Below, piece by piece: positions 258-51,216 of a stretch of DNA of 64,000 bases. Positions within the stretch are counted from its first letter, which is position 1. Each line of letters opens with the position of its first letter. The stretch lies in sequence record NC_017972.1, one strand, 5' to 3'. Below the pieces are notes generated by a model that was not told where the DNA came from, did not search any database, and worked only from the letters and a program-made list of their open reading frames with translations. Position numbers and translations under genes: made by a program.

Positions 258-270
258 AAAACTGTAAATA
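258..270 (+). promoter_or_regulatory. AAWACTGTAAATR motif copy 1 (putative phage promoter)
   Basis: AAAACTGTAAATA, intergenic, upstream of the gene at 397. Confidence 0.65.
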
Positions 271-335
271 CATAGTAAGAGCGAACGATTCAGCGAAGGC
301 GCCACTGATAGCCGCCTAGCCGGACACCGCCATAC

Positions 336-348
336 AAAACTGTAAATA
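336..348 (+). promoter_or_regulatory. AAWACTGTAAATR motif copy 2
   Basis: AAAACTGTAAATA, 78 bp after copy 1. Confidence 0.65.
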
Positions 349-396
349 CAGTGTAGATACACCAACTAAACCCAATCGATAAGTCTGGAGTTTCAA

Positions 397-876
397 ATGG
401 CAAAGGCAAAAAACAGCAAGAAAGGCAAGAACAAAGCAGCCCCGGAAATTTCCGCTGATCTGATGAACCTGATCAATCTGGACGTGCTGCAAATCGTTCT
501 GCAAGCCCTGCAAGACGCCGGTTGCGAAACCGCCGAGGATATGATCGGCGCCGTTGGCATGATGCAGGAAAAGCGTGAAGAAGAAGACGAAGACGAAGAC
601 GAAGAGGAAGAAGACGAAGACGAAGACGAAGAGGAAGAAGACGAGGACGAAGAAGACGAGGACGAAGAAGACGAGGACGAAGAAGACGAGGACGAAGAAG
701 ACGAGGACGAAGACGAAGAAGACGAAGACGAAGACGAAGACGAAGAAGACGAGGATGAAGACGAAGACGAAGAAGACGAAGAGGACGAAGAGGACGAAGA
801 CGAAGACGAAGACGAAGAAGACGAAGAGGACGAGGATGAAGACGAGGATGAAGAAGACGAAGACGACGACGAATAA
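397..876 (+). CDS. Hyperacidic protein: 60-aa N-terminal domain plus a 99-residue pure D/E tract
   Basis: GGAG RBS before the ATG; residues 61-159 are exclusively Asp/Glu; a terminator follows. Confidence 0.9.
   Translation: MAKAKNSKKGKNKAAPEISADLMNLINLDVLQIVLQALQDAGCETAEDMIGAVGMMQEKREEEDEDEDEEEEDEDEDEEEEDEDEEDEDEEDEDEEDEDEEDEDEDEEDEDEDEDEEDEDEDEDEEDEEDEEDEDEDEDEEDEEDEDEDEDEEDEDDDE
577..873 (+). repeat. Low-complexity GAA/GAG/GAC/GAT codon tract
   Basis: 297 nt of Asp/Glu codons with recurring units such as GACGAAGAAGACGAG. Confidence 0.9.
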
Positions 877-926
877 GTCGGACTTCGCTTGACCTTCTGA
901 CTTCGATTCTCGAACAGGAATATCTA

Positions 927-957
927 GGAACCCGGACAACCGCATCCGGGTTTCTTT
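927..957 (+). terminator. Intrinsic terminator
   Basis: GGAACCCGGA-caaccgca-TCCGGGTTTC followed by TTT. Confidence 0.7.
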
Positions 958-1000
958 CTGCCCAAATTCAGCTTTTTAAAAAACCAAGGAAATTTTCGAC

Positions 1001-1534
1001 ATGGCAAAGAATGACGTAACCATCAACGGTAAACAGGAAATCTCCCGTCTGCGCAAACAAGAGCGCGCACTGGAAGCCACTCAGAAAGCAAACGAGAAAG
1101 TAGCCGACGCGGTTAACTCGCAGCTGGAAGAAGTGCGCGCCCAAATCAACGCCGTTGAAGGCAAGCTGGGCGGCGACGAAGCCCCAGCAAAAGGCAAAGC
1201 CAAAGCCGCCGCCAAGGCCCCTGCCAAAGCCGACAAGAAAGCCCCGGCCAAAGGCAAAGCCAAAGCCGAAGAAAAACCGGCTAAAGGCAAGAAATCTACC
1301 AAGGAAGAAGAGAAGCCTGCTAAAGGCAAGAAAACTGCCAAGGTAGAAGAAAAGCCTGCCAAGAAAGCCAAGAAAGAAAAGGCCGAAGAAAAACCGGCCA
1401 AGAAGGACAAGAAAGCCAAGGCCGAAGAAAAGGCCCCGAAAAAGTCCAAGAAAGCCGACAAGGCCGAAAAGGGCGGCAAGAAGTCCAAAAAGAAAGAAGG
1501 CAAATCCAAAAAAGACTTTGACGATTTCGAGTAA
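1001..1534 (+). CDS. Histone H1-like Lys/Ala-rich DNA-binding protein with an N-terminal coiled coil
   Basis: Repeated AKGKAKA and EEKPAK units; ends KKDFDDFE; a terminator follows. Confidence 0.8.
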   Translation: MAKNDVTINGKQEISRLRKQERALEATQKANEKVADAVNSQLEEVRAQINAVEGKLGGDEAPAKGKAKAAAKAPAKADKKAPAKGKAKAEEKPAKGKKSTKEEEKPAKGKKTAKVEEKPAKKAKKEKAEEKPAKKDKKAKAEEKAPKKSKKADKAEKGGKKSKKKEGKSKKDFDDFE

Positions 1535-1558
1535 TCGTTAAGCTCTACTGAGTTAGGG

Positions 1559-1582
1559 AAGGGGGCTATGCCCCCTTTTCTT
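1559..1582 (+). terminator. Intrinsic terminator
   Basis: AAGGGGGC-TAT-GCCCCCTT followed by TTCTT. Confidence 0.85.
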
Positions 1583-1584
1583 GT

Positions 1585-2364
1585 ATGCACTGGCTGCATT
1601 CAGTTGACCAGATCATCTACCGCTTAGGCTCTGCGTGTTTCACCTACACCGAATTTGCGCGTTTGCTTTATGAGCTGCGCGAAGATCGTAGGCACGCATT
1701 GGCTATGGCGCACGCTGAGTCACACCGTAGCGGTTCGCGGCAGACTCTATCTACGGAAGTTGTAAAAGACAAAGAAGAAACACAAGCGAATAAGCTAAGA
1801 GCGCAGGCCACTATCCTTGAGGATGGCGCCCGCAATTTAATTGCGCTGCCCGCTCTGTACGCTGCCCGCCTTGAACTTAAATCTATTGAGTTCATCCTCA
1901 CGCAAGTTGAACCTCACGTTAGAAATATCCCCTTTGCTTTCCAAGAATGCCAGCAGCTGGAAAACACTCTAGCGCTGTTGTGGAAATACCACTTGGAAAT
2001 GCGCACGTACAATCAGCCTACCTTCGATACCCTTTCCGAAATCTCCGCAAGGGGATTGGTCTGTCCGAATTTGTCCAATTGGGAAATTTCCCGTGACAAT
2101 TTCCTGAACAATTACAGTTCCAGTTCTATCGCAACGCATAAGCTTCTGCGGACCACTGACCTGCACGGCTTCTACGCGCTGACAATAGAGCATCTGAAAG
2201 CAGACGACGATTTGCTGATTGCAAAATACACGGAAGCCTTGACTGATGAATACAGCTCGCAAGCCGTTCTCGGTTTACCACCAACAGGCATACGAACTTT
2301 TGCAACAGCTAAAGGCCTTGAAGGACGAAGTTCTGGTTTACCAGACGGTCCCGCACGACCTTAG
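1585..2364 (+). CDS. Hypothetical protein (259 aa)
   Basis: Long ORF, co-oriented with its neighbours; overlaps the next ORF by 119 nt. Confidence 0.65.
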   Translation: MHWLHSVDQIIYRLGSACFTYTEFARLLYELREDRRHALAMAHAESHRSGSRQTLSTEVVKDKEETQANKLRAQATILEDGARNLIALPALYAARLELKSIEFILTQVEPHVRNIPFAFQECQQLENTLALLWKYHLEMRTYNQPTFDTLSEISARGLVCPNLSNWEISRDNFLNNYSSSSIATHKLLRTTDLHGFYALTIEHLKADDDLLIAKYTEALTDEYSSQAVLGLPPTGIRTFATAKGLEGRSSGLPDGPARP

Positions 2365-2569
2365 CATTTTCACGTTTGTTGCCTCGCTACGTACCACTGA
2401 TCCAGACGGAATTTCAATCGTTTACGAAGTGACTGTAAATGAAGAGAAGATACGCCTGATCGACGACCTGCCTGTCGAAGTTCTGGCGGCATACGGAATG
2501 TTCGTCAAGTATGTGGAAGACTGGAAAAATGGTGGCGTACTGCACGAACTACTTAGACACGATGATTAG
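2246..2569 (+). CDS. Hypothetical protein (107 aa)
   Basis: ORF whose stop overlaps the start of the next gene; the start is uncertain. Confidence 0.6.
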   Translation: MNTARKPFSVYHQQAYELLQQLKALKDEVLVYQTVPHDLSIFTFVASLRTTDPDGISIVYEVTVNEEKIRLIDDLPVEVLAAYGMFVKYVEDWKNGGVLHELLRHDD

Positions 2570-3221
2570 TTATTTCAGCTGTGGGTGCCACGCGACCGGC
2601 GACATTCCCACGCTGAGCCGCTGCGAAGAGCACGACGGTTATGTGGTTGTCTGTCACAACCAAAATATCAGCGAGCGCAGATTCTCCAACGAAGTCGGCA
2701 CCGTCTGGCAAGGCACGCTGCTGCATAGCCTGCGCAAATTGAAAGACGCCCAATTTTCGTATGTGTTCGCTTACCCCGAGCATCATGTGCTCAACGCCAT
2801 GAATTGGATTACCCCGCGTGCGTGGCGTGATGCAAGCATGGAAATGATGCGCCACCTAAAGCGCGTTTTAAAACCCGGCGGCTATATCAGTTTCATCGTA
2901 GACCCTAGCGTTGCCCACACGGTAATCTATCAGGCCTACAAGCTTGGCATGAGCGTTGACGTAAAGCCGCCAACGTTTGAGTATTTTGCCAAGCAGCCGT
3001 ATAGCGAATTGTCGTTTGCTTTCGCCGACGCGAAAATACGGCTGATCGTTTACACCGAACACCGCTCCCCGATTCCCGCTAGCGGCTCTGCCGTGCTGGA
3101 CATTAGCGGGATCAAGGTTGATCGCGTTCTGCGCCGAAAGAAAAATAACAAATTGTTGGTGCTGGCCGGGCACCCTAAGCAGTTTGAGATTGTGCAGAAG
3201 CGCCTTAGCCAAGAGGCCTAA
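2562..3221 (+). CDS. Degenerate beta-class N6/N4 DNA methyltransferase-like protein
   Basis: GTLLHSLRKLKDAQFSYVFAYP and HLKRVLKPGGYISF echo GDCLELLKKLPDxSIDLIITDPPY and xRVLKPGG; the catalytic DPPY and FxGxG motifs are not intact. Confidence 0.5.
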   Translation: MISYFSCGCHATGDIPTLSRCEEHDGYVVVCHNQNISERRFSNEVGTVWQGTLLHSLRKLKDAQFSYVFAYPEHHVLNAMNWITPRAWRDASMEMMRHLKRVLKPGGYISFIVDPSVAHTVIYQAYKLGMSVDVKPPTFEYFAKQPYSELSFAFADAKIRLIVYTEHRSPIPASGSAVLDISGIKVDRVLRRKKNNKLLVLAGHPKQFEIVQKRLSQEA

Positions 3222-3224
3222 GCT

Positions 3225-3884
3225 ATGGCGATAAAAAAGATCAAAACCCAGTCCGTGAAAAAGAAGCGGACGACAACAAAGCCTAAGAAATCCCAAGCCA
3301 TTCGCGATGCGGAAAAAGCTAAGGAACGTAAGCAGAAAAGCAAAGCTGCGCCGTTGCGTTCCTCGATCCGCGTCAAGGTGCAGGGTATTCCGTACAAGCT
3401 GCGGAAATTTGAAAACCTCGGCGCCCGGAAATTGCCCGAGTCGTATTACACGATGCAGGGCCAGAGCCTCAAATCTCTGATCCGCAACACGCCTAGACTT
3501 TTCATAAATAATGCCGTGGACGTAGAGCCACACCGGATGCCCAAGCGTTCGTTTACCAAAGGCGGCAAGCCTGCGGTCAAAGGCATTATGTGGACAAACG
3601 ATCCGTTCCGACCTGATCGCGTGCGGCGTTACCACGAAACCTACATCGTCGGCCTCGATTTGAATGGTGAGGAAAAACCACTCTACAAGCACAAGAAAGT
3701 TCTTGTGCAATGTACGTGCGAATCCTACATCTACACTTACGAGTATGCGAACGCATGGCACGGAGCTGCATACCTGATTTATTCTAACGGTGAGCCGCCC
3801 GTGTGGATGAACCCGGCGTTTTCTCCGGGCATGTGCAAACACCTGATTGCGCTGTCCAAAATCGTTATCGAAAATAATCTGTGA
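3225..3884 (+). CDS. SWIM-type zinc-finger protein with a basic N-terminus
   Basis: VQCTCESY...GMCKHLIAL (CxC...CxH). Confidence 0.65.
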   Translation: MAIKKIKTQSVKKKRTTTKPKKSQAIRDAEKAKERKQKSKAAPLRSSIRVKVQGIPYKLRKFENLGARKLPESYYTMQGQSLKSLIRNTPRLFINNAVDVEPHRMPKRSFTKGGKPAVKGIMWTNDPFRPDRVRRYHETYIVGLDLNGEEKPLYKHKKVLVQCTCESYIYTYEYANAWHGAAYLIYSNGEPPVWMNPAFSPGMCKHLIALSKIVIENNL

Positions 3885-3891
3885 GGAAAAC

Positions 3892-4556: not shown

Positions 4557-4557
4557 C

Positions 4558-4722: not shown

Positions 4723-4725
4723 GAA

Positions 4726-5262
4726 ATGAAATACCAAAGTGAACAAATTGAAATCGACGCAATGCTCAAACTGTTCCCCGAGGACATTGCAATTCAAATC
4801 GTGGTGAACGACGACGTTCCGCGTGTGAATGGCCGTCCGATTTCTGAGCAAGAATTCTTTGAAACCGCTTCTACGGAAAAGCTGGCAATTGCCGCTGCCG
4901 TGCGCGGCGTCAAAAAGCTGATCCGTAACAAGGCCCGCGTGAAAACTCTGTTCCTGCGCCCGATGCTTGTGACCGAGCGCGCCGACAAACAATTCACCTG
5001 TTTCATTTCTGCCGCTGTTGTGCTCAAACTTCCACAAGTTGATTTCAGTAAAGCGCTGCTCGCTCTGAAAAATGGTGAGACTGTTCGCCGCGCTGGCTGG
5101 AACGGAGCTAACCAACACGTTTACATGGATGTTTTCGACCGCGACGGCGAATATCTGGAACCGTGTTTCGTGCTGCATAATGCCCAAGGCAAACGCCAGC
5201 CGGGTTGGGTGCCTTCGATGGGCGATATGCTGGCGCTTGATTGGGAAATTCTTCCCGCGTAA
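4726..5262 (+). CDS. DUF2829 (Tad2-like) domain protein with an N-terminal extension of about 105 aa
   Basis: DFSKALLALKNGETVRRAGWNG...GWVPSMGDMLALDWEI is the DUF2829 signature. Confidence 0.75.
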   Translation: MKYQSEQIEIDAMLKLFPEDIAIQIVVNDDVPRVNGRPISEQEFFETASTEKLAIAAAVRGVKKLIRNKARVKTLFLRPMLVTERADKQFTCFISAAVVLKLPQVDFSKALLALKNGETVRRAGWNGANQHVYMDVFDRDGEYLEPCFVLHNAQGKRQPGWVPSMGDMLALDWEILPA

Positions 5263-5286: not shown

Positions 5287-6297
5287 ATGTCTGCTGATAA
5301 GAACATGACGGGCGAACAAATTCAGCAGATTATGGACATGCTTCTGTACAAAGCGCTTGAGCCGCTGGTTTTGTACACGTCTGTTTTCGATGCGCAAGTG
5401 GAATATTTGCTCTGGCTGATTTCCACCAACCGCAAACGCAAACTTAGTTCACTTGAGCGCTCCACTGCCGTGAGTCGGCTGGCCGCTTACTTGAGTGTGC
5501 GGGACCGGCGCCAGCGTTTTGAGTTCGTGCGCACTGCCCGAGTCGAACGCTTTTTCATTCACAAATTTCTGACCACTTTCGTCGAGGCCAACGCGCACTA
5601 CGTCAAGCAGTACAAAGACTTTTTGCGTGAGCCTTCCGAAGAAAAGAAAATTGCCCTTGATCGTTACGCGTCACAGGTTGGACGATGCGAGCGCGGCAAT
5701 TTGTATGTCGCTTTGAAAATTTGCATGGCGTATCTGCAACGGTTTTATTCCTACCGAAACAGCATCGTCGGCCACTACGTCAAGATCGCGAACAAGTGGG
5801 CAAAAGCCCACATCACGCAGACCGGGCGTTCCAGCTACAAAGATTTGGTGCAGTCAATTATCAAGGCGGTAATCACCGCACTCGATAAATACGATAGTCG
5901 CAAAGGCGCGTTGACAACATACATTACTTTCTGGACAAAAAACGCAATGCGTTCGTCTAAGGAACATGAGTACGGCGTGGCTTACACCGTGCCTCAGTCC
6001 CAACGAAAGAAAATGTTTGAAGGCACCAGCAGCTCAATTAACTTCGGTGTCAGTTTAGATTCGCTTTACGCCGATGGCGAAGACGACGAAAACATGGCGC
6101 TACACGCTATCCTTTCGCACGACCGAACAATGGACGACGACATTGAGCGCGACGAATCCTGTTTGCTTGTGCAGCGGATGGCGAAAAAGGTTGACCCGCT
6201 TGGGGTGGCAAGACTGGCGCTGGATATTGGGGAATACTTCACGCCGCAAGAATGCGCAATCATGCAGGCACAGATGGTCGAGGAAGGGTTAGCATGA
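5287..6297 (+). CDS. Phage RNA polymerase sigma-70-like factor
   Basis: YKDLVQSIIKAVITALDKYDSRKGALTTYITFWTKNAM resembles sigma-70 region 2 (DLIQEG..GL.KAV.KFD..RG.KFSTYA.WWI); GGAG RBS before 5287. Confidence 0.8.
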   Translation: MSADKNMTGEQIQQIMDMLLYKALEPLVLYTSVFDAQVEYLLWLISTNRKRKLSSLERSTAVSRLAAYLSVRDRRQRFEFVRTARVERFFIHKFLTTFVEANAHYVKQYKDFLREPSEEKKIALDRYASQVGRCERGNLYVALKICMAYLQRFYSYRNSIVGHYVKIANKWAKAHITQTGRSSYKDLVQSIIKAVITALDKYDSRKGALTTYITFWTKNAMRSSKEHEYGVAYTVPQSQRKKMFEGTSSSINFGVSLDSLYADGEDDENMALHAILSHDRTMDDDIERDESCLLVQRMAKKVDPLGVARLALDIGEYFTPQECAIMQAQMVEEGLA

Positions 6298-6477: not shown

Positions 6478-6490
6478 AAAACTGTAAATG
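6478..6490 (+). promoter_or_regulatory. AAWACTGTAAATR motif copy 3
   Basis: AAAACTGTAAATG, intergenic, about 50 nt upstream of the SSB-like gene. Confidence 0.65.
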
Positions 6491-6541
6491 GTGAGTATGG
6501 GCAATGCCCTATTCGCTTGACATAAACAAAGAGGAATTTTC

Positions 6542-7840: not shown

Positions 7841-7870
7841 GGGGGCCTCCCTGTAGGCCCCCTTTCTTTT
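7841..7870 (+). terminator. Intrinsic terminator
   Basis: GGGGGCCT-ccctgt-AGGCCCCC followed by TTTCTTTT. Confidence 0.85.
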
Positions 7871-10604: not shown

Positions 10605-11819
10605 GTGAAAACCAGTCGTTTCGATGAAATCCTCAAGGCGTTGCACGCCTTTGAAGACGGTATGGCTCAAGCTAAACTCAAATCGCGTCCGGCTATTTCC
10701 GAACGCTTGTCGAAAATCTCTTTGCTGTCTACAGCATTGATGAACGAAGGTAGTCTCCCTCCGGGCACGAAATCAACGTTGCTCAAAATCCGAAACCTCT
10801 GCAAAGATACCGTAGATGCACTCGATAACGGGCGTATTTCCAGTCTTACGGATGTTCGGCTATTCTCCCGCGATACGCTCGGCCCTGCCCACACAATGCT
10901 GCGCAAACAATTGGACGGCAAAGAAACTGCCGCCGATAAAGCGCAAATGCGTGAGTACGTCACCGACGAAGACAAGGCACCAGAAATCACTCGGTTGCTT
11001 GAAGCCTTTGATCCCGGCTCGCGCAACTATGGCGGCGAAACGCTTTCCATTGAAGAAATCAATGCACGCGTTGCGCAGTTCCTCGATCTGCATTTCTCGG
11101 CGTCCCAGCTTCGCAGTATTCGCCCTTACGTCCAAGGGGAAGCTACCCCCGGCGGCGAACCGAAAAAAGACCCCAATTGCGAATGGAACCACGTCACCTT
11201 TAAGGACATTGCCGACGCCTCTGGCTCCGATCCGAAAAGCCGTGCCCGCTTGTCGTCCCTCAAGCGTGAATTGGTTCAAAAGCATGACGATGCAATGGCA
11301 ACTATCGCGCTTTCTTATCGCGACATGAACCGCCGTTTGCCGTCGAAAATGCGCGTTCCGTTTGAAGTGATTTACTTCCCCGTTGTCCCTCTGTTCGACG
11401 ATGCGATGGGCGCCAGCAATAAACGCCTGATCAATGCCGGTCTGGACGTTACCTACGTCGGCGATCATTTCCCGGTATTGGAAAACCAATTGCTGCTCTG
11501 CCTAGACCTCGATAAGCTGGGCATTAAAGAGGCGTTTAAGAAAGTCGGGAATCACGAAGAGGCCCGATTGAAAACTGTAAATAATAAAGAAGAGACAGCA
11601 TTTACCATTAGCCGTATCATTGAGGATATCAATGGCATTGCCGAACGCAACGGCCATCGATTTGCCCTCGCTTCTGATCGGATTGTGCGTAACCCAAAAA
11701 ACCCGCGAATCGCCCTCGCGTGGTTGCTTGACGAACGCATTCGTAAAAAGCTCGCCTCCGTGTTGAACAGCGTTCGCGTTGATTGGGATATCCCATACCA
11801 CGGTGAGAAAAAGGATTGA
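10605..11819 (+). CDS. Hypothetical protein (404 aa)
   Basis: Long ORF with a GTG start; first gene after the 375-bp intergenic region. Confidence 0.8.
   Translation: MKTSRFDEILKALHAFEDGMAQAKLKSRPAISERLSKISLLSTALMNEGSLPPGTKSTLLKIRNLCKDTVDALDNGRISSLTDVRLFSRDTLGPAHTMLRKQLDGKETAADKAQMREYVTDEDKAPEITRLLEAFDPGSRNYGGETLSIEEINARVAQFLDLHFSASQLRSIRPYVQGEATPGGEPKKDPNCEWNHVTFKDIADASGSDPKSRARLSSLKRELVQKHDDAMATIALSYRDMNRRLPSKMRVPFEVIYFPVVPLFDDAMGASNKRLINAGLDVTYVGDHFPVLENQLLLCLDLDKLGIKEAFKKVGNHEEARLKTVNNKEETAFTISRIIEDINGIAERNGHRFALASDRIVRNPKNPRIALAWLLDERIRKKLASVLNSVRVDWDIPYHGEKKD
11571..11583 (+). promoter_or_regulatory. AAWACTGTAAATR motif copy 4 (inside a CDS)
   Basis: AAAACTGTAAATA, about 230 nt upstream of the HNH gene. 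Confidence 0.45.
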
Positions 11820-12406: not shown

Positions 12407-13298
12407 TTGCGCTGGGTTTGAAAGCGTCTCGCTTATTCCCGGTAAGGAAATGCCTTGCAACCGTCAAGGCATTGGAGCATTCAGCAAAACTTGTCGGCGT
12501 TATGTACCCGAGACTGGTTTCCTGCGAGAAACCAAACGGGATATCATTCTGAAACAGGTCGAGAATTCTGATGAAGAAATCGAAATCGACGAGAATGATA
12601 AAAGTCTGGATGAACCAGTGTTCCCGGCTACCGCCATTTCTGACTTGGGCGCCTTGATCGGCATCATGTCGGACCGGTCGCTGCGGGCATTCGGTCTGCT
12701 GCTGGTAAACGAAAAGAAAACCCGTGACCAAGGGTTCCGTTTCATGCAGAAGGTTTTCGTTCGCTATCGCGGCCAACGTAACCGCAATTATGTCTCCAAT
12801 TTCCTTGAGGCGTATGTCTACTACGCCACCCCGCGCATTTTCAAACTGATTAGCGCGGATGGTCGCTGCGTCCTGACCTACGATGTTGGTTGCCGCCCGG
12901 TGATTTACACCGAGTCGGAATTCCAGCCGATTTACGAAGGTATGCTTGAGCGCGGCGCCCTGCTTGATCCTGATACAGTGTCGCTGATTTCCAACCGCTG
13001 GCGCTGCGTAGAGGAACACGAACTCGGTCTGTCGGGCATGATCGACAAGATCGCAGTCAGCACAATTGACGATGTATTCTCTGCGAACAACATTCGCAAA
13101 GACAGCAAGAAAAAAGAACTGCCCAACCTCGTTACGCTCGTATCTGCATTGGCCGAAGGCTATCAAAATGTGGATAAAGAATCCAAGATTTACGACAAGG
13201 AAGTTAAGCGCAATCGTGGCGAGTCTGAAAAGGCTCCGCGTCGCAGCTCCGGTGTCCGGGTTCTTACTGTTCGTGGTGATGAAGGGGAAGATGAATAA
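12258..13298 (+). CDS. Hypothetical protein with an N-terminal Cys cluster
   Basis: CGDC...C...C motif; stop overlaps the next start; the start is uncertain (12258 or 12300). Confidence 0.75.
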   Translation: MGTNDVAHPRIKTLMGNEAADKDAVQERQRLKRQKEYQAEKGSLKPTCGDCAGFESVSLIPGKEMPCNRQGIGAFSKTCRRYVPETGFLRETKRDIILKQVENSDEEIEIDENDKSLDEPVFPATAISDLGALIGIMSDRSLRAFGLLLVNEKKTRDQGFRFMQKVFVRYRGQRNRNYVSNFLEAYVYYATPRIFKLISADGRCVLTYDVGCRPVIYTESEFQPIYEGMLERGALLDPDTVSLISNRWRCVEEHELGLSGMIDKIAVSTIDDVFSANNIRKDSKKKELPNLVTLVSALAEGYQNVDKESKIYDKEVKRNRGESEKAPRRSSGVRVLTVRGDEGEDE

Positions 13299-14407
13299 TG
13301 TTGGTTGAATACGTTGCTGAATTGGGCCTCGATCCGCATTCCCGTGACGGCCTGTTGCTGCTGGAAGAGTGCGTTTTGTGTCTGGCTGGTGTGAACTCTG
13401 CTTTTGCGTTCCAACACAACGTCAAAGGCATTGATACCGGCCCGTCTGGTCTGAGTGGTAAACTGATCCGGTTGAAATTGCAGGAACACAGCTATCGGAT
13501 GCTGAACGTGAAATACGCGGCGCTGTATCTGTCCCTGCTCCCGAACAAACCGGAATCCTACGAAAAGCTACGGCCTATGCTGGCTGCGCCTGACGTGGAT
13601 TTGTTCAAGCATTTGTTTGCACGTCGCAAGTTCAAGAGTGCCGTAAAGGCACGCGCAAAATATCTGAAAGTCGGTATCAATGATGTTTGTCCGAAGGCAA
13701 TGCACCGGGACCACAAACGCTTTGACGCATACTACCCGAAAATCATGACTCACATTAACGCTCGCGTCGGCGCAAAGCTGCGCTTCCTGATGCGGGCTGA
13801 GAACATGGTAAGACAGGACTTGTCGCGGGATTTGATGTGTAAGACTTTGCGCTCTTACTACTCGCTGTTGCCCACTAAGCAACCCGAGGCGTACATTCTG
13901 AATTACTTGCGGCGCTCGGCATCGAACGAAACAACCAACATCATCGAAAAATATACAACCGATAAACGCCGCCGCATGATCGACGTGGGCGACGACGGTT
14001 TCGGTGGTCGGGAATACGATGTGATCTGCCGTAGTGAAAACCAAACCGGCGTAGGTGAAACCGAAGGCATGACGGAATTCGCAATGCTGATGGAAGACGT
14101 GGTAGACCCCACCACGCAACACCTCGACTCTTCGATCCTGATTCACCGTTTGTTCAAACGTTTTACCGGGCGCAAGCTCAAAGCTCTGCAAATTTTGGCC
14201 GGTGGTGTGGACGACGGCTTCAATCGTTACCTGCGCAAAAACAACCGCCTGAAACACGGGCAGGACCATACGCTGTTCCAGTCTCGCGTTTCGCACGTTT
14301 CGTTTTTGGAAACACTGGCGCACTACTTGGGTGTGTATATCGAACCTTTCATGAAGTTTGTGCAGTCCATCGGACGGATGCTTACTGCGCATGAGGAATT
14401 TGCTTAA
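13298..14407 (+). CDS. Hypothetical protein, possibly a second divergent sigma-like factor
   Basis: RQDLSRDLMCK...YILNYLRRSASNETTNIIEK (region 2-like) and a C-terminal LETLAHYLGV (region 4/HTH-like); weak similarity. Confidence 0.4.
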   Translation: MLVEYVAELGLDPHSRDGLLLLEECVLCLAGVNSAFAFQHNVKGIDTGPSGLSGKLIRLKLQEHSYRMLNVKYAALYLSLLPNKPESYEKLRPMLAAPDVDLFKHLFARRKFKSAVKARAKYLKVGINDVCPKAMHRDHKRFDAYYPKIMTHINARVGAKLRFLMRAENMVRQDLSRDLMCKTLRSYYSLLPTKQPEAYILNYLRRSASNETTNIIEKYTTDKRRRMIDVGDDGFGGREYDVICRSENQTGVGETEGMTEFAMLMEDVVDPTTQHLDSSILIHRLFKRFTGRKLKALQILAGGVDDGFNRYLRKNNRLKHGQDHTLFQSRVSHVSFLETLAHYLGVYIEPFMKFVQSIGRMLTAHEEFA

Positions 14408-17030: not shown

Positions 17031-19957
17031 AGGTGAAAAAGAGCAAGAATTCTAACATTCTGGTTCCCGACAAATCCCTAGAAGTGCCTGACCGAAGTTT
17101 GATCACGTCGGGCAACGCGTTTGATTATTTGCTTTCTCTGAAATCCACTGGGCGCACACCTGCGGCCCGTGTGGACGACCTTGATTCGATTGGCAAATCA
17201 GCTGCATCCACGATCACTGCGATGGACGTGGATTCAGAAATCAACATTGCGAAAACCATCCGCGAATTGATGGATTCCAAAGTCGTCGTGCCCAAGGATA
17301 TGAAGATCGACGACGGCGATTTGCCGATGGCGAAAAACTTCTATGAATGGGTGACGCAAGACAGATTCGGAACAATTGGTGATGAACGGCCCTTTATCGA
17401 GCAATTGATATGGGGCCTTGTCGTTTTCAACGACTATTGCCCGAAATGTTCCGACATGGAATGGCTGCTGCACGCGCACAAAGTCGATGACACCTACACA
17501 AAACTCGAACGGAAAGTTGCGATTTTTGAGAACGGCAAATGCCCTCACTGCAAGCTAGGCCGCGCCAAGGCAGTGAAAAAAGGCCTAATGCCTTATTACA
17601 ACGAACTGGCGGTTAACGCGGGCCAGCGTTGTGTCATTGATTCCACGCCGGTAATTACCCCGCACGGCCTGCTGCACATTGCAGAAGTTTTCCCTGATGC
17701 GCCGGAAGGTTTCACCGACTTTGAATTTGATGTTTTCAACGGCACCGAGTTTGAGACAACATCGCACTACTTCAAAGCCACGCCTGAGCCTGTGTATCGT
17801 GCCATGACTTCACTGGGCTTTTCCGTATGTGGCACAACCGATCACCCGATCCTGACCAAAGAAGGATTCGTGAAAATCGGCGAGCTGAAACTGACGGAAA
17901 AACTGGATGTTGTTTATGGCTCGCGTGTGTTCGGTCCGAAGTCTTACCCGAATGCCTATGCAAACGGCATGAAATTCCGTGATGCAGCGGTAAGCCTGAA
18001 TCTGCGTTGCGCCAACGCGGAAGACGTGACCGATTGGCTGCGCGGTGTGTTTGCTCTCACGCCACGGAAAGCGTTTATCAACATGGTTGTTTTGCGTGAT
18101 ATTTCTGCGCTGCTGTTGAACGCCGGTTATCCGCACAAGATTGACGGCCCGTCGATTGTGTTTAGCTCGGTTGAGCACGAAAACCTGCTCAATAAAGTCT
18201 GGCGCTCCGGTGTAATCGAAGACACAATTACTTCTGTAATTAGCGCAGGCACACAAGCCACCTACGATTTCACTTTGCCGAAGACGCACCAGTTTGTTAC
18301 GGGTGGGATTATCTCGCACAACTCTGGTAAATCTCACACGGTCGGCACCTACCTTGCGCCCTACCATTTGCATCGTTTGTTGAAGCTGCAAAAACCGGCG
18401 CAATTCTACGGCCTGTCGCGAACCACAATGCTGCAAGGCACGTTCGCTGCGCTGACCTATACGCAGGCCAAGGATACTTTGTGGACGCCGTTCTATGGCG
18501 CCCTCACAGAATCCAACTGGTATCGCCAATATCACTCGATGTTGCGCCACTACGAAAACGTTTACGGTGAGCGATTATTTAAGCTGACCGACACCTACGT
18601 CGATTACCGCGTGCGCGGCTTGCAGTATTATCCTGTAGGCCCGGACAAGCGGATTCTTAGGGGAAGGACGAGGGTATTTTTCTCACTCGACGAAATTGCA
18701 TATTTCGACGCCGACAAAGACAGCGCGAAGGTCAAGATTAACGGTCACGAAATTTACGACGCCTTGGCGAACAGTCTCTATACCGTGCGTGGTGCGGCAG
18801 ACGTTTTGCTGGGGCGAGGCCTTGACGACGTTTTGAGTGCGTATGCGATGAACGTTTCGTCGCCTACCGCCAAAAACGACATGATTCATACGCTGTTGAA
18901 TCGTGCAAAAGAAGGTAGTTCGATTTACGGGATTCACCGTCCGACTTGGGAAGTAAACCCCAACTTCAAACGGACTTCCAAAATCATTACCGAGGCCTAC
19001 AAGAAAGACCCGGTTTCTGCTGAGAAAAACTTTGGTGCAAACCCGCCGCTGATTGCGAACCCGTTCCTTGCTAACCATAAGTTCATCATGAACATGGAAG
19101 ACACTAGCAAGAAAAACCCGATCAAAATCGAAGCGCGTTTCAAGAACAGCAAGAAAGTCGGCCAGTCGTACATGTACGGCGAAATCACGAAACTCAAGAA
19201 ATCCGGCAAGCCTTCGATCCTCGCAATTGACGCCGGTTTGAAGGACAACAGTTTCTCCATTGCTGGCGGAACCATCGACGAAAACTTTAATTTATGTGTA
19301 GACCTGATTTGCGAAGTTATTCCGCAACCGGGCTTCTTTATCAACTACTCGCTTATGTATTCGGAAGTAATTCTGCCGATTATGCAGGCGCGTAACGTGA
19401 AGGTTTTGCTGGCTGACCGCTGGAATTCGCTTTCGCTTTTGAGCGATGCACAGATTGATATGGGCGACCCGGATGCCGACGACGGTATGCCGACGTTCAT
19501 TGCGAAACAGCACAGTTTGAAATATACAGAAATGGTTGGTGTGCGCACGCGCATTGAGCAGGGCCAAGTGATTGTGCCTAAGTCGGAAATCAAAGTGAGC
19601 ACTCTGATGGACGCGCTCGATTCCAACTATCGTGAATTCTATGTTGGTTCTCCTATTGCGCATTTGTTCAAGCAAATGTTTACCATTAAAGACCTAGAAA
19701 AAGGCGTAGGTAAAGGCGACGGGTACACCGACGATAACTGGCGCGCTATGGCTTTGTTGCTGTGGGGTTTGCAGGAAGAAGAATTCACCGCAATGCTTAT
19801 GGCCGAACCGATGAATATGCAGCTGGCGCATCCGAGTGTTTTGGGTGCATCGAAACTTAGCAGCGGTGGCGGTTCCAGTGTAGGCTCCGGGGGCGGAGGC
19901 GGCTTGACCACGAAAAATGGTGCGCCGTTGATGATTATGGGAAGTGGGAGACGATGA
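17027..19957 (+). CDS. terL: Terminase large subunit (intein-containing)
   Basis: After removing the intein: GQR-SGKS Walker A, SLDE Walker B, ILAIDAG RNase H-like nuclease; N-terminal CxxC pairs. Confidence 0.88.
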   Translation: MKVKKSKNSNILVPDKSLEVPDRSLITSGNAFDYLLSLKSTGRTPAARVDDLDSIGKSAASTITAMDVDSEINIAKTIRELMDSKVVVPKDMKIDDGDLPMAKNFYEWVTQDRFGTIGDERPFIEQLIWGLVVFNDYCPKCSDMEWLLHAHKVDDTYTKLERKVAIFENGKCPHCKLGRAKAVKKGLMPYYNELAVNAGQRCVIDSTPVITPHGLLHIAEVFPDAPEGFTDFEFDVFNGTEFETTSHYFKATPEPVYRAMTSLGFSVCGTTDHPILTKEGFVKIGELKLTEKLDVVYGSRVFGPKSYPNAYANGMKFRDAAVSLNLRCANAEDVTDWLRGVFALTPRKAFINMVVLRDISALLLNAGYPHKIDGPSIVFSSVEHENLLNKVWRSGVIEDTITSVISAGTQATYDFTLPKTHQFVTGGIISHNSGKSHTVGTYLAPYHLHRLLKLQKPAQFYGLSRTTMLQGTFAALTYTQAKDTLWTPFYGALTESNWYRQYHSMLRHYENVYGERLFKLTDTYVDYRVRGLQYYPVGPDKRILRGRTRVFFSLDEIAYFDADKDSAKVKINGHEIYDALANSLYTVRGAADVLLGRGLDDVLSAYAMNVSSPTAKNDMIHTLLNRAKEGSSIYGIHRPTWEVNPNFKRTSKIITEAYKKDPVSAEKNFGANPPLIANPFLANHKFIMNMEDTSKKNPIKIEARFKNSKKVGQSYMYGEITKLKKSGKPSILAIDAGLKDNSFSIAGGTIDENFNLCVDLICEVIPQPGFFINYSLMYSEVILPIMQARNVKVLLADRWNSLSLLSDAQIDMGDPDADDGMPTFIAKQHSLKYTEMVGVRTRIEQGQVIVPKSEIKVSTLMDALDSNYREFYVGSPIAHLFKQMFTIKDLEKGVGKGDGYTDDNWRAMALLLWGLQEEEFTAMLMAEPMNMQLAHPSVLGASKLSSGGGSSVGSGGGGGLTTKNGAPLMIMGSGRR
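17630..18322 (+). mobile_element. Intein of 231 aa with a degenerate LAGLIDADG remnant, inserted in the terminase Walker A
   Basis: Starts CVIDSTPV; block B TTDHPIL; ends IISHN with Ser at +1; WLRGVFA and ISALLLNAGY look like endonuclease remnants. Confidence 0.9.
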
Positions 19958-23924: not shown

Positions 23925-23947
23925 CGCTAATTTAATCTTACAGTCGA

Positions 23948-23960
23948 AATACTGTAAATA
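23948..23960 (+). promoter_or_regulatory. AAWACTGTAAATR motif copy 5
   Basis: AATACTGTAAATA in an AT-rich intergenic region. Confidence 0.6.
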
Positions 23961-24119
23961 TAAATAAAGCTCGATGCTCTCAACTAGACAAGGTTATATC
24001 CCCGATTGTAATGCGATACTAGGCTTAGCTGGCCGCTAGAAAATGCAAAGCAATTGGGTGCGCCTTATACTGATCACAATGGAGCTTTATCAAACCTTTG
24101 CCTAAACCCAAAGGGAACG

Positions 24120-26082: not shown

Positions 26083-26113
26083 GTAAATTCCCCATTAATT
26101 TAATGGTATCAAC

Positions 26114-30213: not shown

Positions 30214-30607
30214 AAAGTATTTGAAAGGTGGGCAGATTGTCCGCCTCGAAAAGAATTATCCGTACATTCGCGACCTCGGTTCTCGCCTGCTGAGACTGCC
30301 GATAATCAAACGCGGAAATTTTGTGGACAAGCTTCCACAGAGTGACGACGCGCTGATCGCCTTTGCACAGCAACGGAAATTCGATCTGTACTACGGCTAC
30401 AAAATCTGTAAATTAAATGGAAGGGACAGCCTATTGGCGTCCCTTTTGTGCGTTGATAAGAGCGGCTGTGTGGTCGAAGACAAGTCCAGCCGCCTCGACA
30501 ACACGTCCTGCTACGTCGGCATTAAGGTGCCAGAAGCGGACATTAAATCGCGAACTTACGCAACAAAATTCAGTCGCGCGGACTATCTGCCAAAGGGTTA
30601 TCAATGA
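30182..30607 (+). CDS. Hypothetical protein with a tag-like N-terminus (MKLYLTTA)
   Basis: First member of the N-terminal motif array. Confidence 0.7.
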   Translation: MKLYLTTASAKKYLKGGQIVRLEKNYPYIRDLGSRLLRLPIIKRGNFVDKLPQSDDALIAFAQQRKFDLYYGYKICKLNGRDSLLASLLCVDKSGCVVEDKSSRLDNTSCYVGIKVPEADIKSRTYATKFSRADYLPKGYQ

Positions 30608-46373: not shown

Positions 46374-46375
46374 AT

Positions 46376-47471: not shown

Positions 47472-47800
47472 TTGTAGCGCTCCAGAATTTCGTAACCGCG
47501 AATGGACATGGCAGTAATCACACGAACCGGGGCACCAGACTTGAAATCCAGACGCGGCGAGAACATGGGCAGGCCGTTGAAATAGCCGAGGTGGCCGGGC
47601 GCTTTGGAATCAGCCACAAAGTAAACGTGATCTTTCATTTCCTTCAACATACCGTTGGTGTCGGAAACCACGATAGCCTTGGCGCCCTTGAACAGCTCTT
47701 CCCACTTTTCAGCGGACGGCATTTTGTGAACTTGTGTCCACGCGTTGGTGTGCTGGTAAATCAGGTCGGAAACAACGTTTGCGTCGAGTGCATTTTGCAT
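47468..47800 (-). CDS. Hypothetical protein (110 aa)
   Basis: Coupled ORF in the minus-strand operon. Confidence 0.65.
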   Translation of the reverse strand: MQNALDANVVSDLIYQHTNAWTQVHKMPSAEKWEELFKGAKAIVVSDTNGMLKEMKDHVYFVADSKAPGHLGYFNGLPMFSPRLDFKSGAPVRVITAMSIRGYEILERYK

Positions 47801-47830
47801 GGTAATTACTCCGTTTGGTCAGTGTTGCGT

Positions 47831-48550
47831 TTAGTGTTTTGGTGCAATCCAGATTTCGCGGTGGAATGCGATTGGTTCGTCGGATTTACACAGCGCCGGA
47901 TGCAGACGGGAATCTGTGTATATCTCTACTTTACCATTTACAGTATTAAGCGTGCCGACGTAACCATTCATACTGCGCTCAGGAACGGCCTCGAAAGTAA
48001 ACATGCGACGTTCGACTTCACCGCTTACCAGTTTGGCGTCAAGGTCAGCAATAAAATCGGTGATATATTCACACGGAATGCTGATCGCTTTGACCAGCGT
48101 GAGATACGGCATCATGCCAGCCATCAGGCCATCGTAGGTCAGCGTTGCAGGCGACCACGTATAAGCGCGTTTTTCTTTCATGCCAAGGTATGGGCAACGC
48201 GACAATTCCAATTCGCGGACGTAAGCGCCTGTGAATTGACCGAACAGAACCGGGGCGCCTACTGGGTATTTGTCGGCAGAATAAATATCCGAGAAAATGT
48301 CAGTTCCCAAGTAGGTAGCCATGTAGCCGCCCGCTGTGTTTTCTGGCGTCATTTCTGCAAACTGGAAACCGTGGAATTGCCCAGCCCATTTTGCGACTAA
48401 GCCCCACTGGGTATCCGGCACCAGAACGTAGGCGGCATCGGGCGCCATGAGCCGGAATTGTTCCATAGCTTCAACGGAATCGTTCAGGAATAACGTTTTC
48501 CCGTCACGCGGCAAATCGCGGAAATTGAAACGGTCCTCAATCCTTTTCAT
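47831..48550 (-). CDS. Hypothetical protein (239 aa)
   Basis: ORF in the minus-strand operon. Confidence 0.7.
   Translation of the reverse strand: MKRIEDRFNFRDLPRDGKTLFLNDSVEAMEQFRLMAPDAAYVLVPDTQWGLVAKWAGQFHGFQFAEMTPENTAGGYMATYLGTDIFSDIYSADKYPVGAPVLFGQFTGAYVRELELSRCPYLGMKEKRAYTWSPATLTYDGLMAGMMPYLTLVKAISIPCEYITDFIADLDAKLVSGEVERRMFTFEAVPERSMNGYVGTLNTVNGKVEIYTDSRLHPALCKSDEPIAFHREIWIAPKH
47935..47947 (-). promoter_or_regulatory. AAWACTGTAAATR motif copy 6 (inside a CDS)
   Basis: The minus strand reads AATACTGTAAATG, about 135 nt upstream of the gene starting at 47800. Confidence 0.45.
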
Positions 48551-49002
48551 TGCTCCACCTTCACCAGAACTTCTGCCGCGTAAACGCCGGTAGTCATGGG
48601 GCCTACCAGCCCGCCGTTATCCGGGTGCGAATCGTAGGTTTCGCCGTTGTAGTAAATAACCGAATGATTTGTGCCGCGAACCGAGGTGCCAGAAAGCATG
48701 ATCGGAACGTCGATTTGAAAACTGAGATATTCCTTCACCACATCCCAGTCACCGACCAGCGTAACGCTAAACAAAACGTAGCCTTGCTCTTTCAGATAGG
48801 CACGCATCCGGTTAATGCAGGCGGCACCTTCAACGTCGGAATATTCCGGCTTGAAAGTCAGGCCTTCCGCAAAGTGCGGAACTTCCTCGACCGTTGGTTT
48901 GCATAGCAGGCTGGCTACCACGGTGCGCATACAATCGCCGTTCTGGTGCGGCGGGTTATGTTTGATAGTTTGTTTGTGGTGAATAAACGGCAGATTTTCC
49001 AT
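48547..49002 (-). CDS. Hypothetical protein with a Cys-His-Asp (papain/C39-like) arrangement
   Basis: QNGDCMRTVVASLL...NHSVIY...YDSHP. Confidence 0.45.
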   Translation of the reverse strand: MENLPFIHHKQTIKHNPPHQNGDCMRTVVASLLCKPTVEEVPHFAEGLTFKPEYSDVEGAACINRMRAYLKEQGYVLFSVTLVGDWDVVKEYLSFQIDVPIMLSGTSVRGTNHSVIYYNGETYDSHPDNGGLVGPMTTGVYAAEVLVKVEQ

Positions 49003-49010
49003 GTCAGTTC

Positions 49011-49439
49011 TCACAAGAAATAGTCGGACAAACGCGCTTGGGATTGCGCCATGCACATGCTGATATCGGCAGGGTCTTGCTCGCAGGACTCCAAATATTC
49101 ATCCCACTTCCACCACATGTTATCTACAAACGCTTTCGGACTGCCACGATCCACATAGCGTTTGTTGTAGTCGAATTTCAGGTCGCGCTTCGGGTAGAAA
49201 AGTGCGTATTTCATTCCGGCATCTTGCAGCGCTTTACGCAGCTGCGGCCACGTCGGCACCAGCACAGTAACGCCGGGGATTTTCAATGCTTCGCGGATTT
49301 GCTCCAGATACGGTCCCATGTCGCTTTTGTATTCGGGAAAATCCACGTCCACAAACGCGTAGCTTTGCTGGGCCAGCATGGATTTGCCGGTGCCCGGAAA
49401 TGCGCTAACGATCCGTGTATCGAGCGGCAGCTTTGACAT
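49011..49439 (-). CDS. Small P-loop kinase-like protein
   Basis: IVSAFPGTGKS followed by VDVD. Confidence 0.65.
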   Translation of the reverse strand: MSKLPLDTRIVSAFPGTGKSMLAQQSYAFVDVDFPEYKSDMGPYLEQIREALKIPGVTVLVPTWPQLRKALQDAGMKYALFYPKRDLKFDYNKRYVDRGSPKAFVDNMWWKWDEYLESCEQDPADISMCMAQSQARLSDYFL

Positions 49440-49440
49440 T

Positions 49441-49851
49441 TTATTTTCCAGTGATCGCATCGTTGAGTTTGATTTCTTCGCCGTCCGCCATTTTGCGGCT
49501 GAACAGTTCCATAGTGTAGCCAACGGTGCCGAACAAATCGGTGCCTGCATATTCCTCGGTATCGCGCACGAATTTATGCGCTTCGTCCTGCACCTCCTCC
49601 CACCAGAACAACCAGCAGCCAGTGGTCCCGGCGTCGATCATGTCGCTGATCTTTTGCAAGGTTTCGCGGGTGTGGTAAGCCTTCGGGTTATTGTGGCCGA
49701 GAATCTTTGCATCGAAATTCACATACGTGTTGAATTCCGGCAGGAAGTTGAAACCGGTATTGGTAAGCCAGCCGTGCTCATTTTCCAGCACTTCCAGCCA
49801 CGAGAAAATGTCACCTTCAAACTGCGAAAAATTCGGTACTTTCGGTTCCAT
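49441..49851 (-). CDS. Hypothetical protein (136 aa)
   Basis: ORF immediately downstream of thyA. Confidence 0.65.
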   Translation of the reverse strand: MEPKVPNFSQFEGDIFSWLEVLENEHGWLTNTGFNFLPEFNTYVNFDAKILGHNNPKAYHTRETLQKISDMIDAGTTGCWLFWWEEVQDEAHKFVRDTEEYAGTDLFGTVGYTMELFSRKMADGEEIKLNDAITGK

Positions 49852-49853
49852 TA

Positions 49854-51134
49854 TTAGTTACCTGCGATAGGGGCTTTGATGGTTTCGTAAGATTCGTAGC
49901 CAACCAGATTAACGTCTTCCAGCTGGATATCCAGAATCGAGTTAACCGGACCGCTTTTGATTTCCAGTTTCGGCGATTTGTAGATGATCGGGCGGCTCAG
50001 CTGTTCGCGTACCTGCTCGACGTGGTTGGAATAAATGTGCGCATCGCCGATGGTAATGTGCATATTGCGAGCCTGCAAATCGTGTGCGTGGGCCAGCATT
50101 TCGGTAAGCATTGCGTACTGGGCAACGTTGAACGGCGCGCCCAAGAACATGTCATTGGAACGCATGTACAGCTTGCAATCCAAATAGTATTTTCCGTTCC
50201 CGTTTTTGTTGCTGCTAACGTACCACTGCGCCAGCGTATGGCAGGGCGGCAAACTCATTTCATCCAGCTGCGCAACGTTCCAGCCGGTCAGGATAATGCG
50301 ACGGCCCGCGCTGTGTTTTTCGATTTCGCCATTGTGGAAACGGATTTCGTTTTTGATCGCCTCTTCGACCGCTGCAATCTGGTCAACTTTGCGGCCAATG
50401 GCGATTTCCCAACCGTTAAACATTTTGCCGATAACGGAGTAACCTTTTGCAGCCCAGCCGTCTGGATCGGCACGCCAATCAGCGCTGTCGATAATACGTA
50501 TATCGTCCCATTCGCGCCACTGTTTCCCGTAGATCGGGCCAAGGTCGCCGCCGCTCAGTGCGCGTTCTGGAATGCCCCAGTTATTTAGCTGCAAATCCAG
50601 CTGTGCCCATTGCTCTTCGGTCGCTTTGTCCGTATCCAGAATGAAACCCACACCGGCCTCGATATTTTCAGGCAGCGCGTTTTCATTAACCGTAGACGGC
50701 ACGCCGATATCCCGCAGGAACTGTCGAGCTTTCATGCGTTGGCCGGACGTGCCCAAAAGCATACGCTCTTTTGCGTGCAGTTTTCTGCCTTCGTAAACTT
50801 CGGTGCCCGGTTTTACGTTCTGGTCCCAAATGTTTACGTTGATATCCTTCAACGTTTTCAGATCAGATTTGCCTTCCAGCATCCACTTAATCGTTTCCTT
50901 TTTCATGGTAACGAAGCGCAGAATTTTGGCAGTGATCGCCGGGAAGCCGTCGCGCAAATCCAGCGAGTAATTGACCGAACCGAACACGCTAATGGTTCCA
51001 GTTTTGGTGCGGTCATTGCGCACTTCGCCATGATCCAGAATGTGCTTGAGCACGCCCCGGAATTCAAAATCAAACGTGTTGTCTTCGTAGAAAACACGGT
51101 CCTCTGACGAACGAACCAAACCTGCGTAGAACAT
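49854..51134 (-). CDS. thyA: Thymidylate synthase with large insertions
   Basis: RNDRTKTGT, GDLGPIYG, SLPPCH, YMRSNDMFLGAPFNVAQY, IGDAHIYSNH. Confidence 0.95.
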   Translation of the reverse strand: MFYAGLVRSSEDRVFYEDNTFDFEFRGVLKHILDHGEVRNDRTKTGTISVFGSVNYSLDLRDGFPAITAKILRFVTMKKETIKWMLEGKSDLKTLKDINVNIWDQNVKPGTEVYEGRKLHAKERMLLGTSGQRMKARQFLRDIGVPSTVNENALPENIEAGVGFILDTDKATEEQWAQLDLQLNNWGIPERALSGGDLGPIYGKQWREWDDIRIIDSADWRADPDGWAAKGYSVIGKMFNGWEIAIGRKVDQIAAVEEAIKNEIRFHNGEIEKHSAGRRIILTGWNVAQLDEMSLPPCHTLAQWYVSSNKNGNGKYYLDCKLYMRSNDMFLGAPFNVAQYAMLTEMLAHAHDLQARNMHITIGDAHIYSNHVEQVREQLSRPIIYKSPKLEIKSGPVNSILDIQLEDVNLVGYESYETIKAPIAGN

Positions 51135-51203
51135 GTTAATGCCTCATTTACGTGGATTAAACAGGATAAATCACTGCATTGGTTAATTTATCGGTATATC
51201 ACA

Positions 51204-51216
51204 TATTTACAGTATT
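51204..51216 (-). promoter_or_regulatory. AAWACTGTAAATR motif copy 7
   Basis: The minus strand reads AATACTGTAAATA, in the divergent intergenic region 70 nt upstream of thyA. Confidence 0.65.

Follow-up and report, generated by a model that had tools for sequence, protein, structure and literature searches.

A conserved single-box element of Pseudomonas phage Lu11 as a probable phage-specific middle promoter, and two candidate sigma factors for its recognition

We analyzed a recurrent element, AAWACTGTAAATR (motif A), in a 64,000-nucleotide stretch of sequence record NC_017972.1 (the window), which was 100% identical to genome positions 124001 to 188000 (+ strand) of Pseudomonas phage Lu11 (JQ768459/NC_017972), a 280,538-bp jumbo myovirus whose host is P. 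putida. Judged from its sequence, motif A very probably has promoter function, and the best overall explanation, which we consider probable, is a phage-specific single-box middle promoter recognized by a phage sigma factor on the host core RNA polymerase. A promoter prediction for motif A is already public and was made independently by the depositors of the GenBank/RefSeq record (Adriaenssens et al. 2012). Because they annotated the same sites (20 regulatory features, 16 nt each [CTGTAAATAnnnnGTA]) as "putative middle/late promoter," the promoter interpretation is not new. The record, which additionally has three features labeled as sigma70-like promoters, names no reader, gives no conservation, does not separate middle from late, and lacks the second class of sites (GTAATTTAA) described below.

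Motif A had exactly seven matches in the window, at 258, 336, 6478, 11571, and 23948 (+ strand) and at 47935 and 51204 (- strand), with the coordinates and strands given in the preliminary description; 100 dinucleotide-preserving shuffles of the window contained none. The number of matches expected at equal base frequencies, previously put at about 0.01, was nearer to 0.03, which makes practically no difference. Comparison with the GenBank annotation bore out that five copies (258, 336, 6478, 23948, and 51204) are intergenic and that all seven (7/7) are co-oriented with the local genes; the two intragenic copies are those at 11571 (Lu11_0176) and 47935 (Lu11_0219). The five intergenic copies are among the 20 features of the record (262-277, 340-355, 6482-6497, 23952-23967, and 51197-51212), which omits the intragenic copies, including the conserved one at 11571. 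One feature of the record (107991..280538) spans 172 kb, an evident coordinate slip for a 16-nt site at 107991-108006. The window copies are as follows (HRDY3 is the closest sequenced relative of Lu11).

258..277, + strand: motif A copy 1 (AAAACTGTAAATACATAGTA), upstream half of a tandem pair before Lu11_0161; GenBank feature 262-277
336..355, + strand: motif A copy 2, 78 nt past copy 1, with the start codon of Lu11_0161 following after 41 nt; GenBank feature 340-355
6478..6497, + strand: motif A before the SSB gene Lu11_0172; the unit is closed by a strong terminator at 7841-7862
11571..11590, + strand: motif A within Lu11_0176 (codons K-T-V-N), approximately 240 nt before Lu11_0176A; unannotated in GenBank
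23948..23967, + strand: motif A before Lu11_0186; GenBank feature 23952-23967; orthologous HRDY3 copy at 115430
47928..47947, - strand: motif A-like copy within Lu11_0219, upstream of Lu11_0218 through the DHFR gene
51197..51216, - strand: motif A before the thymidylate synthase gene Lu11_0223; GenBank feature 51197-51212; orthologous HRDY3 copy at 89271

The whole Lu11 genome contained 20 exact copies of AAWACTGTAAATR and 44 copies of the looser core CTGTAAAT[AG]. Every one of the latter (44/44) was co-oriented with the gene that it occupies or precedes (binomial p = 1e-13), and 24 of the 44 were intergenic, compared with a non-coding share of 5.6% of the genome according to our own gene calls (p = 6e-19). 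The 3' ends of the intergenic sites were mostly located 25 to 50 nt ahead of the start codon. Furthermore, ACTGTAAATA was the commonest 10-mer of Lu11, acidic-residue codon repeats excepted.

The complete element is approximately 20 nt long (AAAACTGTAAATAnnnAGTA). Alignment of the 20 exact copies revealed conservation past the 13-mer core (AAAACTGTAAATA nnn A G T A), with an A at position 20 (A20) in 17 of 20 copies, and the G at position 2 of TGTAAATA was invariant in Lu11. If TAAATA is set at positions -12 to -7, the conserved A20 would be the transcription start and AAAACTG would be an upstream extension. From this spacing, we infer a start site at A20; that of copy 1 is predicted at or near its final A (position 277). 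There was no -35 element, in line with the preliminary description: all positions more than 4 nt upstream of ACTGTAAA carried at most 0.35 bit (82 distinct sites from 15 relatives). A consensus scan for sigma70-like promoters found none at the motif A copies, and the TAAATA hexamer has A or G at -7, unlike the sigma70 hexamer TAnnnT.

Motif A was also conserved in related phages. In HRDY3 (76% DNA identity in places), we detected 51 ACTGTAAA sites (consensus RAAACTGTAAAYA), with copies at places equivalent to 258/336, 6478, 11571, 23948, and 51204. The 258/336 pair is a 78-nt tandem duplication, and HRDY3 likewise has a tandem motif A pair at the orthologous place. BLAST alignments around the window copies ended in the flanking genes and left the intergenic DNA unspanned. 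In 15 IMG/VR loci (274 kb; sigma proteins 55 to 74% identical), ACTGTAAA was present 101 times on the sigma/gene strand and 0 times on the opposite strand (reversed control, 12), and in each of the 15 loci, either the sigma gene had motif A at its 3' end or SSB was preceded by a copy. Motif A was thus strand specific (101:0), co-oriented with genes (44/44), and enriched in non-coding DNA (24/44), as promoters are. The intragenic copy at 11571 was encoded by identical codons at the same place in 12 of 12 relatives examined, in proteins that are merely 26 to 52% identical; this codon-level retention indicates selection on the DNA and hence a conserved internal promoter.

We extended the comparison to eight genomes carrying the Lu11_0170 sigma family (Lu11, HRDY3, PaBG, Alexandra, Afa-NA1, PhiXhv-12, Illi-2, and BcepSauron), in which sigma identity ranges from 73% down to 22%. 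In six of these eight genomes, representing four host genera, the word GTAAATA/GTAAAT ranked first or nearly first among upstream k-mers, and the GTAAA core was present, together with both sigma families discussed below, in all seven complete sigma-carrying genomes. The words differed in detail: ATCCTGTAAATA in PhiXhv-12 (17 of 19 copies upstream), TAGTAAATAA in BcepSauron (17 of 21), CTGTAAAC or AAACTGTAAAC in PaBG, and CTGTAAAG or AATCTGTAAAG in Afa-NA1. The presence of the variant AATCTGTAAAG led us to reject Afa-NA1 as a box-less exception. The record of this Alcaligenes phage (PV550095; 78 kb) is labeled complete and starts within the sigma-SSB-RecA block typical of 250- to 310-kb jumbo phages; an IS605 transposase adjoins its sigma gene, and the Lu11_0170 family is present and the Lu11_0178 family absent. 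The record may be a partial assembly.

An unbiased count of k-mers in the upstream gaps of Lu11, HRDY3, and PaBG yielded two families, namely, motif A and TAATTTA (motif B; GTAATTTAA/GTAATTTAAnnnTA), the latter having the form (G/C)TAATTTA(A) n3-4 TA. Motif B has the same geometry as motif A, with TAATTT replacing TAAATA, and neither motif has a -35 box; TAATTT shows the canonical T-12, A-11, and T-7 of sigma70-family -10 elements. TAATTTA was rare in the Lu11 genome, with 14 of its 20 copies located in co-oriented upstream gaps; in HRDY3 and PaBG, 18 of 19 and 12 of 14 copies, respectively, were so placed. Motif B was conserved in HRDY3, PaBG, and Alexandra (CTAATTT in this phage). Like words found elsewhere (CTAATTT, CCCTAATT, and CAATTTTA) were more variable across the clade than those of motif A, and the three most distant phages had motif B only as looser variants.

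The two motifs were partitioned by gene class. Motif A precedes the genes for DNA polymerases, clamp loader, primase, topoisomerase II, SSB and RecA, an endonuclease, and thymidylate synthase; approximately 10 intergenic sites were before DNA-metabolism genes, and none was before annotated virion or lysis genes. Conversely, motif B precedes both tail sheath genes and the genes for the baseplate wedge, tail fiber, head-gene block, and endolysin, with approximately 10 TAATTTA sites before virion/lysis genes and none before DNA-metabolism genes. This split is a nonblind reading of RefSeq product names with approximately 10 informative sites per side, and it is complete. Its position before virion and lysis genes makes motif B probably a late promoter class, and motif A would, with good probability, represent the replication-gene (middle) class, a timing read from the genes that it precedes. 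The earlier proposal of a phage-specific middle-class promoter is therefore well supported by co-orientation, intergenic enrichment, spacing to start codons, positional conservation, and the split from the virion-gene motif.

The motif B copies of the window are listed below. The first of them is 20 nt upstream of the motif A copy at 23948, and the copy at 51184-51190, which faces baseplate genes, is divergent from the motif A copy at 51204.

23928-23934, + strand: motif B, absent from the GenBank annotation
26096-26102, + strand: motif B, absent from the GenBank annotation
51184-51190, + strand: motif B, absent from the GenBank annotation
58069-58075, + strand: motif B, absent from the GenBank annotation
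19288-19294, + strand: motif B within Lu11_0182
30409-30415, - strand: motif B, antisense in Lu11_0196

Regarding the genes downstream of the window copies, a DnaB-type helicase gene is downstream of the 11571 copy together with a topoisomerase-like gene and the sigma-like gene Lu11_0178. For Lu11_0161, the first gene behind the tandem pair, there was no evidence of the nucleoid protein named in the preliminary description. The product of this gene (window 397-876, + strand; 159 residues) consists of a short Lys-rich basic N terminus and an approximately 100-residue all-Asp/Glu tail, and a family search with it returned no match. A role as a DNA mimic or as a histone-like counter-ion is conceivable.

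Two proteins encoded in the window are candidate readers of these boxes.

5287..6297, + strand: Lu11_0170, RpoD-like sigma factor (Pfam Sigma70_r2; phrog_17569)
13298..14407, + strand: Lu11_0178, second sigma-like protein, annotated as "hypothetical protein"

Lu11_0170 possesses region 2 of the sigma70 family (Sigma70_r2, 30.3 bits against a cutoff of 24), the only such match in the Lu11 genome. Regions 1.2, NCR, and 2 appear, from the family consensus, to be followed by a 3.0 helix, a region 3.2 finger (SVSLD...DD), and, as a partial region 4, a short helical end. A profile of 68 homologues matched RpoD regions 1.2 to 2.4 (E = 1e-5), and the AF2 model (pLDDT, 83) aligned with sigma70 residues 110 to 450 over approximately 220 residues (VIA-align; Z, 12 to 15.5; rmsd, 3.6 to 4.3 Å). 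There was no Pfam region 4 match in this reading frame, and whole-chain alignments (rmsd, 15 to 16 Å) ended at sigma70 residue 580 to 584, before the -35 recognition helix; the Illi-2 homologue terminates earlier still. Lu11_0170 thus likely lacks the -35 recognition helix, and a sigma factor that does not read a -35 element fits a single-box promoter. Another Lu11 protein, gp329, was considered as a sigma factor on a weak region 4 match (E = 0.06) and was rejected, being otherwise unsupported. Immediately upstream of the Lu11_0170 gene, Lu11_0169 (window 4726-5262, + strand) encodes a protein whose C-terminal half corresponds to PF11195 (Tad2-like, Thoeris anti-defence 2; E = 1.2e-20).

The predicted fold of Lu11_0178 is that of an ECF-like sigma factor, with sigma2 and sigma4 domains behind an approximately 135-residue N-terminal extension (AF2 model; pLDDT, 84; residues 139 to 369 extend from sigma2 to the end of sigma4). 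The best 50 VIA-align rows were all sigma factors (Z, 5.5 to 7.6; rmsd of the sigma2 domain, 2.5 to 3.0 Å). Foldseek E values were at least 0.096, and searches by Pfam, PHROG function, PDB sequence, and profile gave no match to sigma factors. For a helical protein, such structural scores are modest, and we therefore regard Lu11_0178 as sigma-like, not as a proven sigma factor. Profile searches detected the family in all seven complete genomes. Lu11_0178 is the Lu11 counterpart of PaBG gene 112, which the PaBG paper calls a doubtful sigma; that paper names one sigma and gives no promoters.

We propose that AAWACTGTAAATR is the core of the -35-less, single-box promoter and that a phage-encoded sigma factor would enable the host core RNA polymerase to bind the element and begin transcription. 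No T7-type or beta/beta' RNA polymerase was found in Lu11, although this is a weak negative, as the T7-type control matched nowhere; with no detectable phage RNA polymerase, Lu11 must rely on the core enzyme of the host. The motif A transcripts would cover genes for replication, recombination, and nucleotide metabolism (SSB/RecA, thymidylate synthase, DNA polymerases, clamp loader, primase, and topoisomerases) and also both phage sigma-like genes. In the resulting cascade, early genes would be transcribed from host sigma70-type promoters, middle genes from motif A, and virion/lysis genes from GTAATTTAAnnnTA. The likeliest reader of motif A would be Lu11_0170, feeding back on its own gene; this assignment, which the preliminary description had also made, is plausible but unproven, and we give it an even chance. 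In its favor, Lu11_0170 is an RpoD-like sigma factor, its apparent lack of the -35 recognition helix suits a single-box promoter, and its family accompanies the box in all genomes examined.

Motif A resembles the late promoters of T4 (TATAAATA), which require gp55, gp33, and the gp45 clamp. TGTAAATA matches TATAAATA at 7 of 8 positions, both elements are single-box, -35-less, A/T-rich, and centered near -10, the distance to the conserved A is compatible, and the host core polymerase with a phage sigma-family protein, as in T4, is what we propose for Lu11. The likeness is closer than the loose one first suggested; however, homologues of gp55 (phrog_234) and gp33 (PF16805) were not found in the Lu11 genome at E ≤ 10. 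The Lu11_0170 profile aligned with T4 gp55 at an hhalign probability of 0.8%, and gp55 is minimal, whereas Lu11_0170 is RpoD-like with regions 1.2 to 3.2. A short gp55-like SLDxLY match in Lu11_0170 is better read as an ordinary region 3.2 motif. The Lu11 box further differs in having a 5- to 7-nt upstream extension (AAAACTG) and in lying before replication genes and not, as in T4, before virion genes; the virion/lysis genes carry GTAATTTAA instead.

Other promoter types were less similar. The host sigma70 promoter (TTGACA-N17-TATAAT) does not fit, given that no -35 element is conserved and that -7 is A or G. Likewise, the T4 middle promoter (a MotA box near -30 with a sigma70 -10 element) does not fit, since no conserved position was seen near -30 and the hexamer is unlike that of sigma70; homologues of MotA and AsiA were not searched for. 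Extended -10 (TGn) sigma70 promoters share the dispensability of a -35 element, contacts just upstream of -10, and a TG before an A/T-rich hexamer, but the TG of Lu11 is one base nearer to the hexamer than in TGnTATAAT, there is no T at -7, and the upstream extension is far longer and peculiar to this phage clade. In the sigma cascades of SPO1 (gp28 and then gp33/34) and of phiEco32 and 7-11 (gp36), the host polymerase is likewise retargeted to temporal promoter classes. Promoters of these phages are described as having their own consensus elements, and their sigma genes belong to an earlier class. In contrast, both candidate sigma genes of Lu11 are within the class in question, and neither Lu11 class has a -35 box.

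Several observations weigh against a self-activating Lu11_0170 as the reader or against the promoter reading of individual sites, and some of them favor a different assignment, in which motif A is read by Lu11_0178 or an unrecognized early factor and Lu11_0170 is the late sigma factor that reads GTAATTTAA. We consider this assignment rather unlikely. In the usual phage cascade, a sigma gene is in the class preceding the one that it activates. Both sigma-like genes of Lu11 are downstream of motif A sites; the Lu11_0170 gene follows the tandem pair at a distance of 5 kb, an interval in which neither a sigma70-like promoter nor a terminator was found, and in Alexandra, a motif A site is located 41 nt before the sigma gene. 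If Lu11_0170 reads motif A, something else must prime its expression. Lu11_0178 in turn has a sigma-like fold and a family present in 7/7 complete genomes, and motif B has the canonical T-12, A-11, and T-7. On the other hand, the Lu11_0178 gene is also downstream of a motif A site (11571) and thus has the same timing problem, its model has a complete sigma4 domain although neither motif has a -35 box, and its assignment as a sigma factor comes from modest Z scores (5.5 to 7.6) with no sequence support.

Assignment of the reader by co-occurrence failed, as both families were present in the seven complete genomes and both motif classes in every genome examined; because conservation reaches as far for Lu11_0178 and motif B as it does for Lu11_0170 and motif A, co-occurrence cannot decide. 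Gene position cuts both ways, because it fits motif A making the sigma factor for motif B and equally a self-activating sigma factor. ECF sigma factors activate themselves. Motif B sites were found up to 9 kb upstream of sigma genes only twice, at the Illi-2 homologue of Lu11_0170 (5.3 kb) and the PaBG homologue of Lu11_0178 (2.3 kb). The motif A core is more uniform than that of motif B, and this tighter conservation, paralleled by the strongly conserved regions 2.3 to 3.0 of Lu11_0170, slightly tilts the balance toward Lu11_0170 as the reader of motif A. Also to be set against our proposal, the region 4.2 truncation of Lu11_0170 is read from the consensus and from the end points of high-rmsd whole-chain alignments. 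The 47935 copy is the weakest case (T, not A, at position 20) and is unconserved in HRDY3; the near-matches previously noted at 2432 and 30401 do exist, at 2432 (ACTGTAAAT) and 30405 (TCTGTAAAT), but both fall within genes and have no conserved counterpart in HRDY3. A search of RNA runs returned no run containing Lu11, only three low-share metagenome contig sets, and start sites were not found in the literature for any relative.

It is also conceivable, though improbable, that no phage sigma factor is involved and that the host sigma70 holoenzyme reads the box after remodeling by phage early proteins in the manner of T4 MotA/AsiA. Early units with sigma70-like promoters do encode a LytTR protein (gp024) and a helix-turn-helix (HTH) protein (gp021), and the AACTGT part of the box shows a possible resemblance to the ACAGTT core of LytTR sites. 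However, among the compared genomes, homologues of gp024 and gp021 were present in HRDY3 only, whereas the box is clade-wide, and we ruled out these regulators as general readers. Moreover, an activator bound to a box at about -19 to -7 would clash with the polymerase, TAAATA does not have the T at -7 required by sigma70, and no -35 or MotA-box-like element is present further upstream. The gp024 protein (early unit, - strand) has a LytTR DNA-binding domain (PF04397; E = 5e-12). A leader of approximately 60 nt recurs five times in the Lu11 genome (6261, 9866, 11552, 243869, and 276374; all - strand) and is composed of a hairpin (CGGGC...GCCCG), CACTCAC-like bases, and TTAGGGAAGTTT abutting the ATG. 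At least three of the five leaders are just downstream of the sigma70-like promoters of the record, and the five copies look like early transcription units that share a 5' leader.

A very improbable explanation is that the box is not a promoter but an RNA signal (for mRNA processing or as a translational operator) or a site for a repressor or replication protein. An RNA signal would be equally strand specific and could equally lie 25 to 50 nt before start codons. Nevertheless, a strong hairpin followed by a T-run was found within 25 nt before intergenic motif A sites in 3 of 25 cases in Lu11, 3 of 25 in HRDY3, and 7 of 26 in Alexandra. Transcripts from upstream should stop before such copies, and the genes downstream thus need a new start, which favors a promoter over an mRNA-level signal. 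The A/T-rich, -10-like composition of the box, its 7/8 match to the T4 late promoter, the A conserved at a fixed distance as at a start site, and a partition among gene classes like that of promoter classes point in the same direction; no obvious conserved pairing was noticed around the box, although no fold test was made.

The clade considered here, whose hosts belong to Pseudomonas, Erwinia, Xanthomonas, and Burkholderia, includes Lu11, PaBG, Alexandra/Y3, PhiXhv-12, Illi-2, and BcepSauron. A broader reading, which we offer tentatively and rate slightly below even, is that the middle and late programs of this whole clade may run on two -35-less single-box classes (GTAAATA- and TAATTT-type), each read by a dedicated phage sigma factor. 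One would be a self-activating RpoD-like protein without a -35 helix, acting on a 13-nt extended -10 box akin to the T4 late promoter; the other would be a cryptic ECF-like protein missed by annotation. Motif A itself is a correct, already recorded prediction, and its chief use is in annotation. Taken together, motifs A and B allow the transcription units of Lu11 and related phages to be mapped and flag conserved promoters hidden within genes. The question of which of two candidate sigma factors reads which of two promoter classes bears on how widespread giant phages without an RNA polymerase reprogram the host enzyme.

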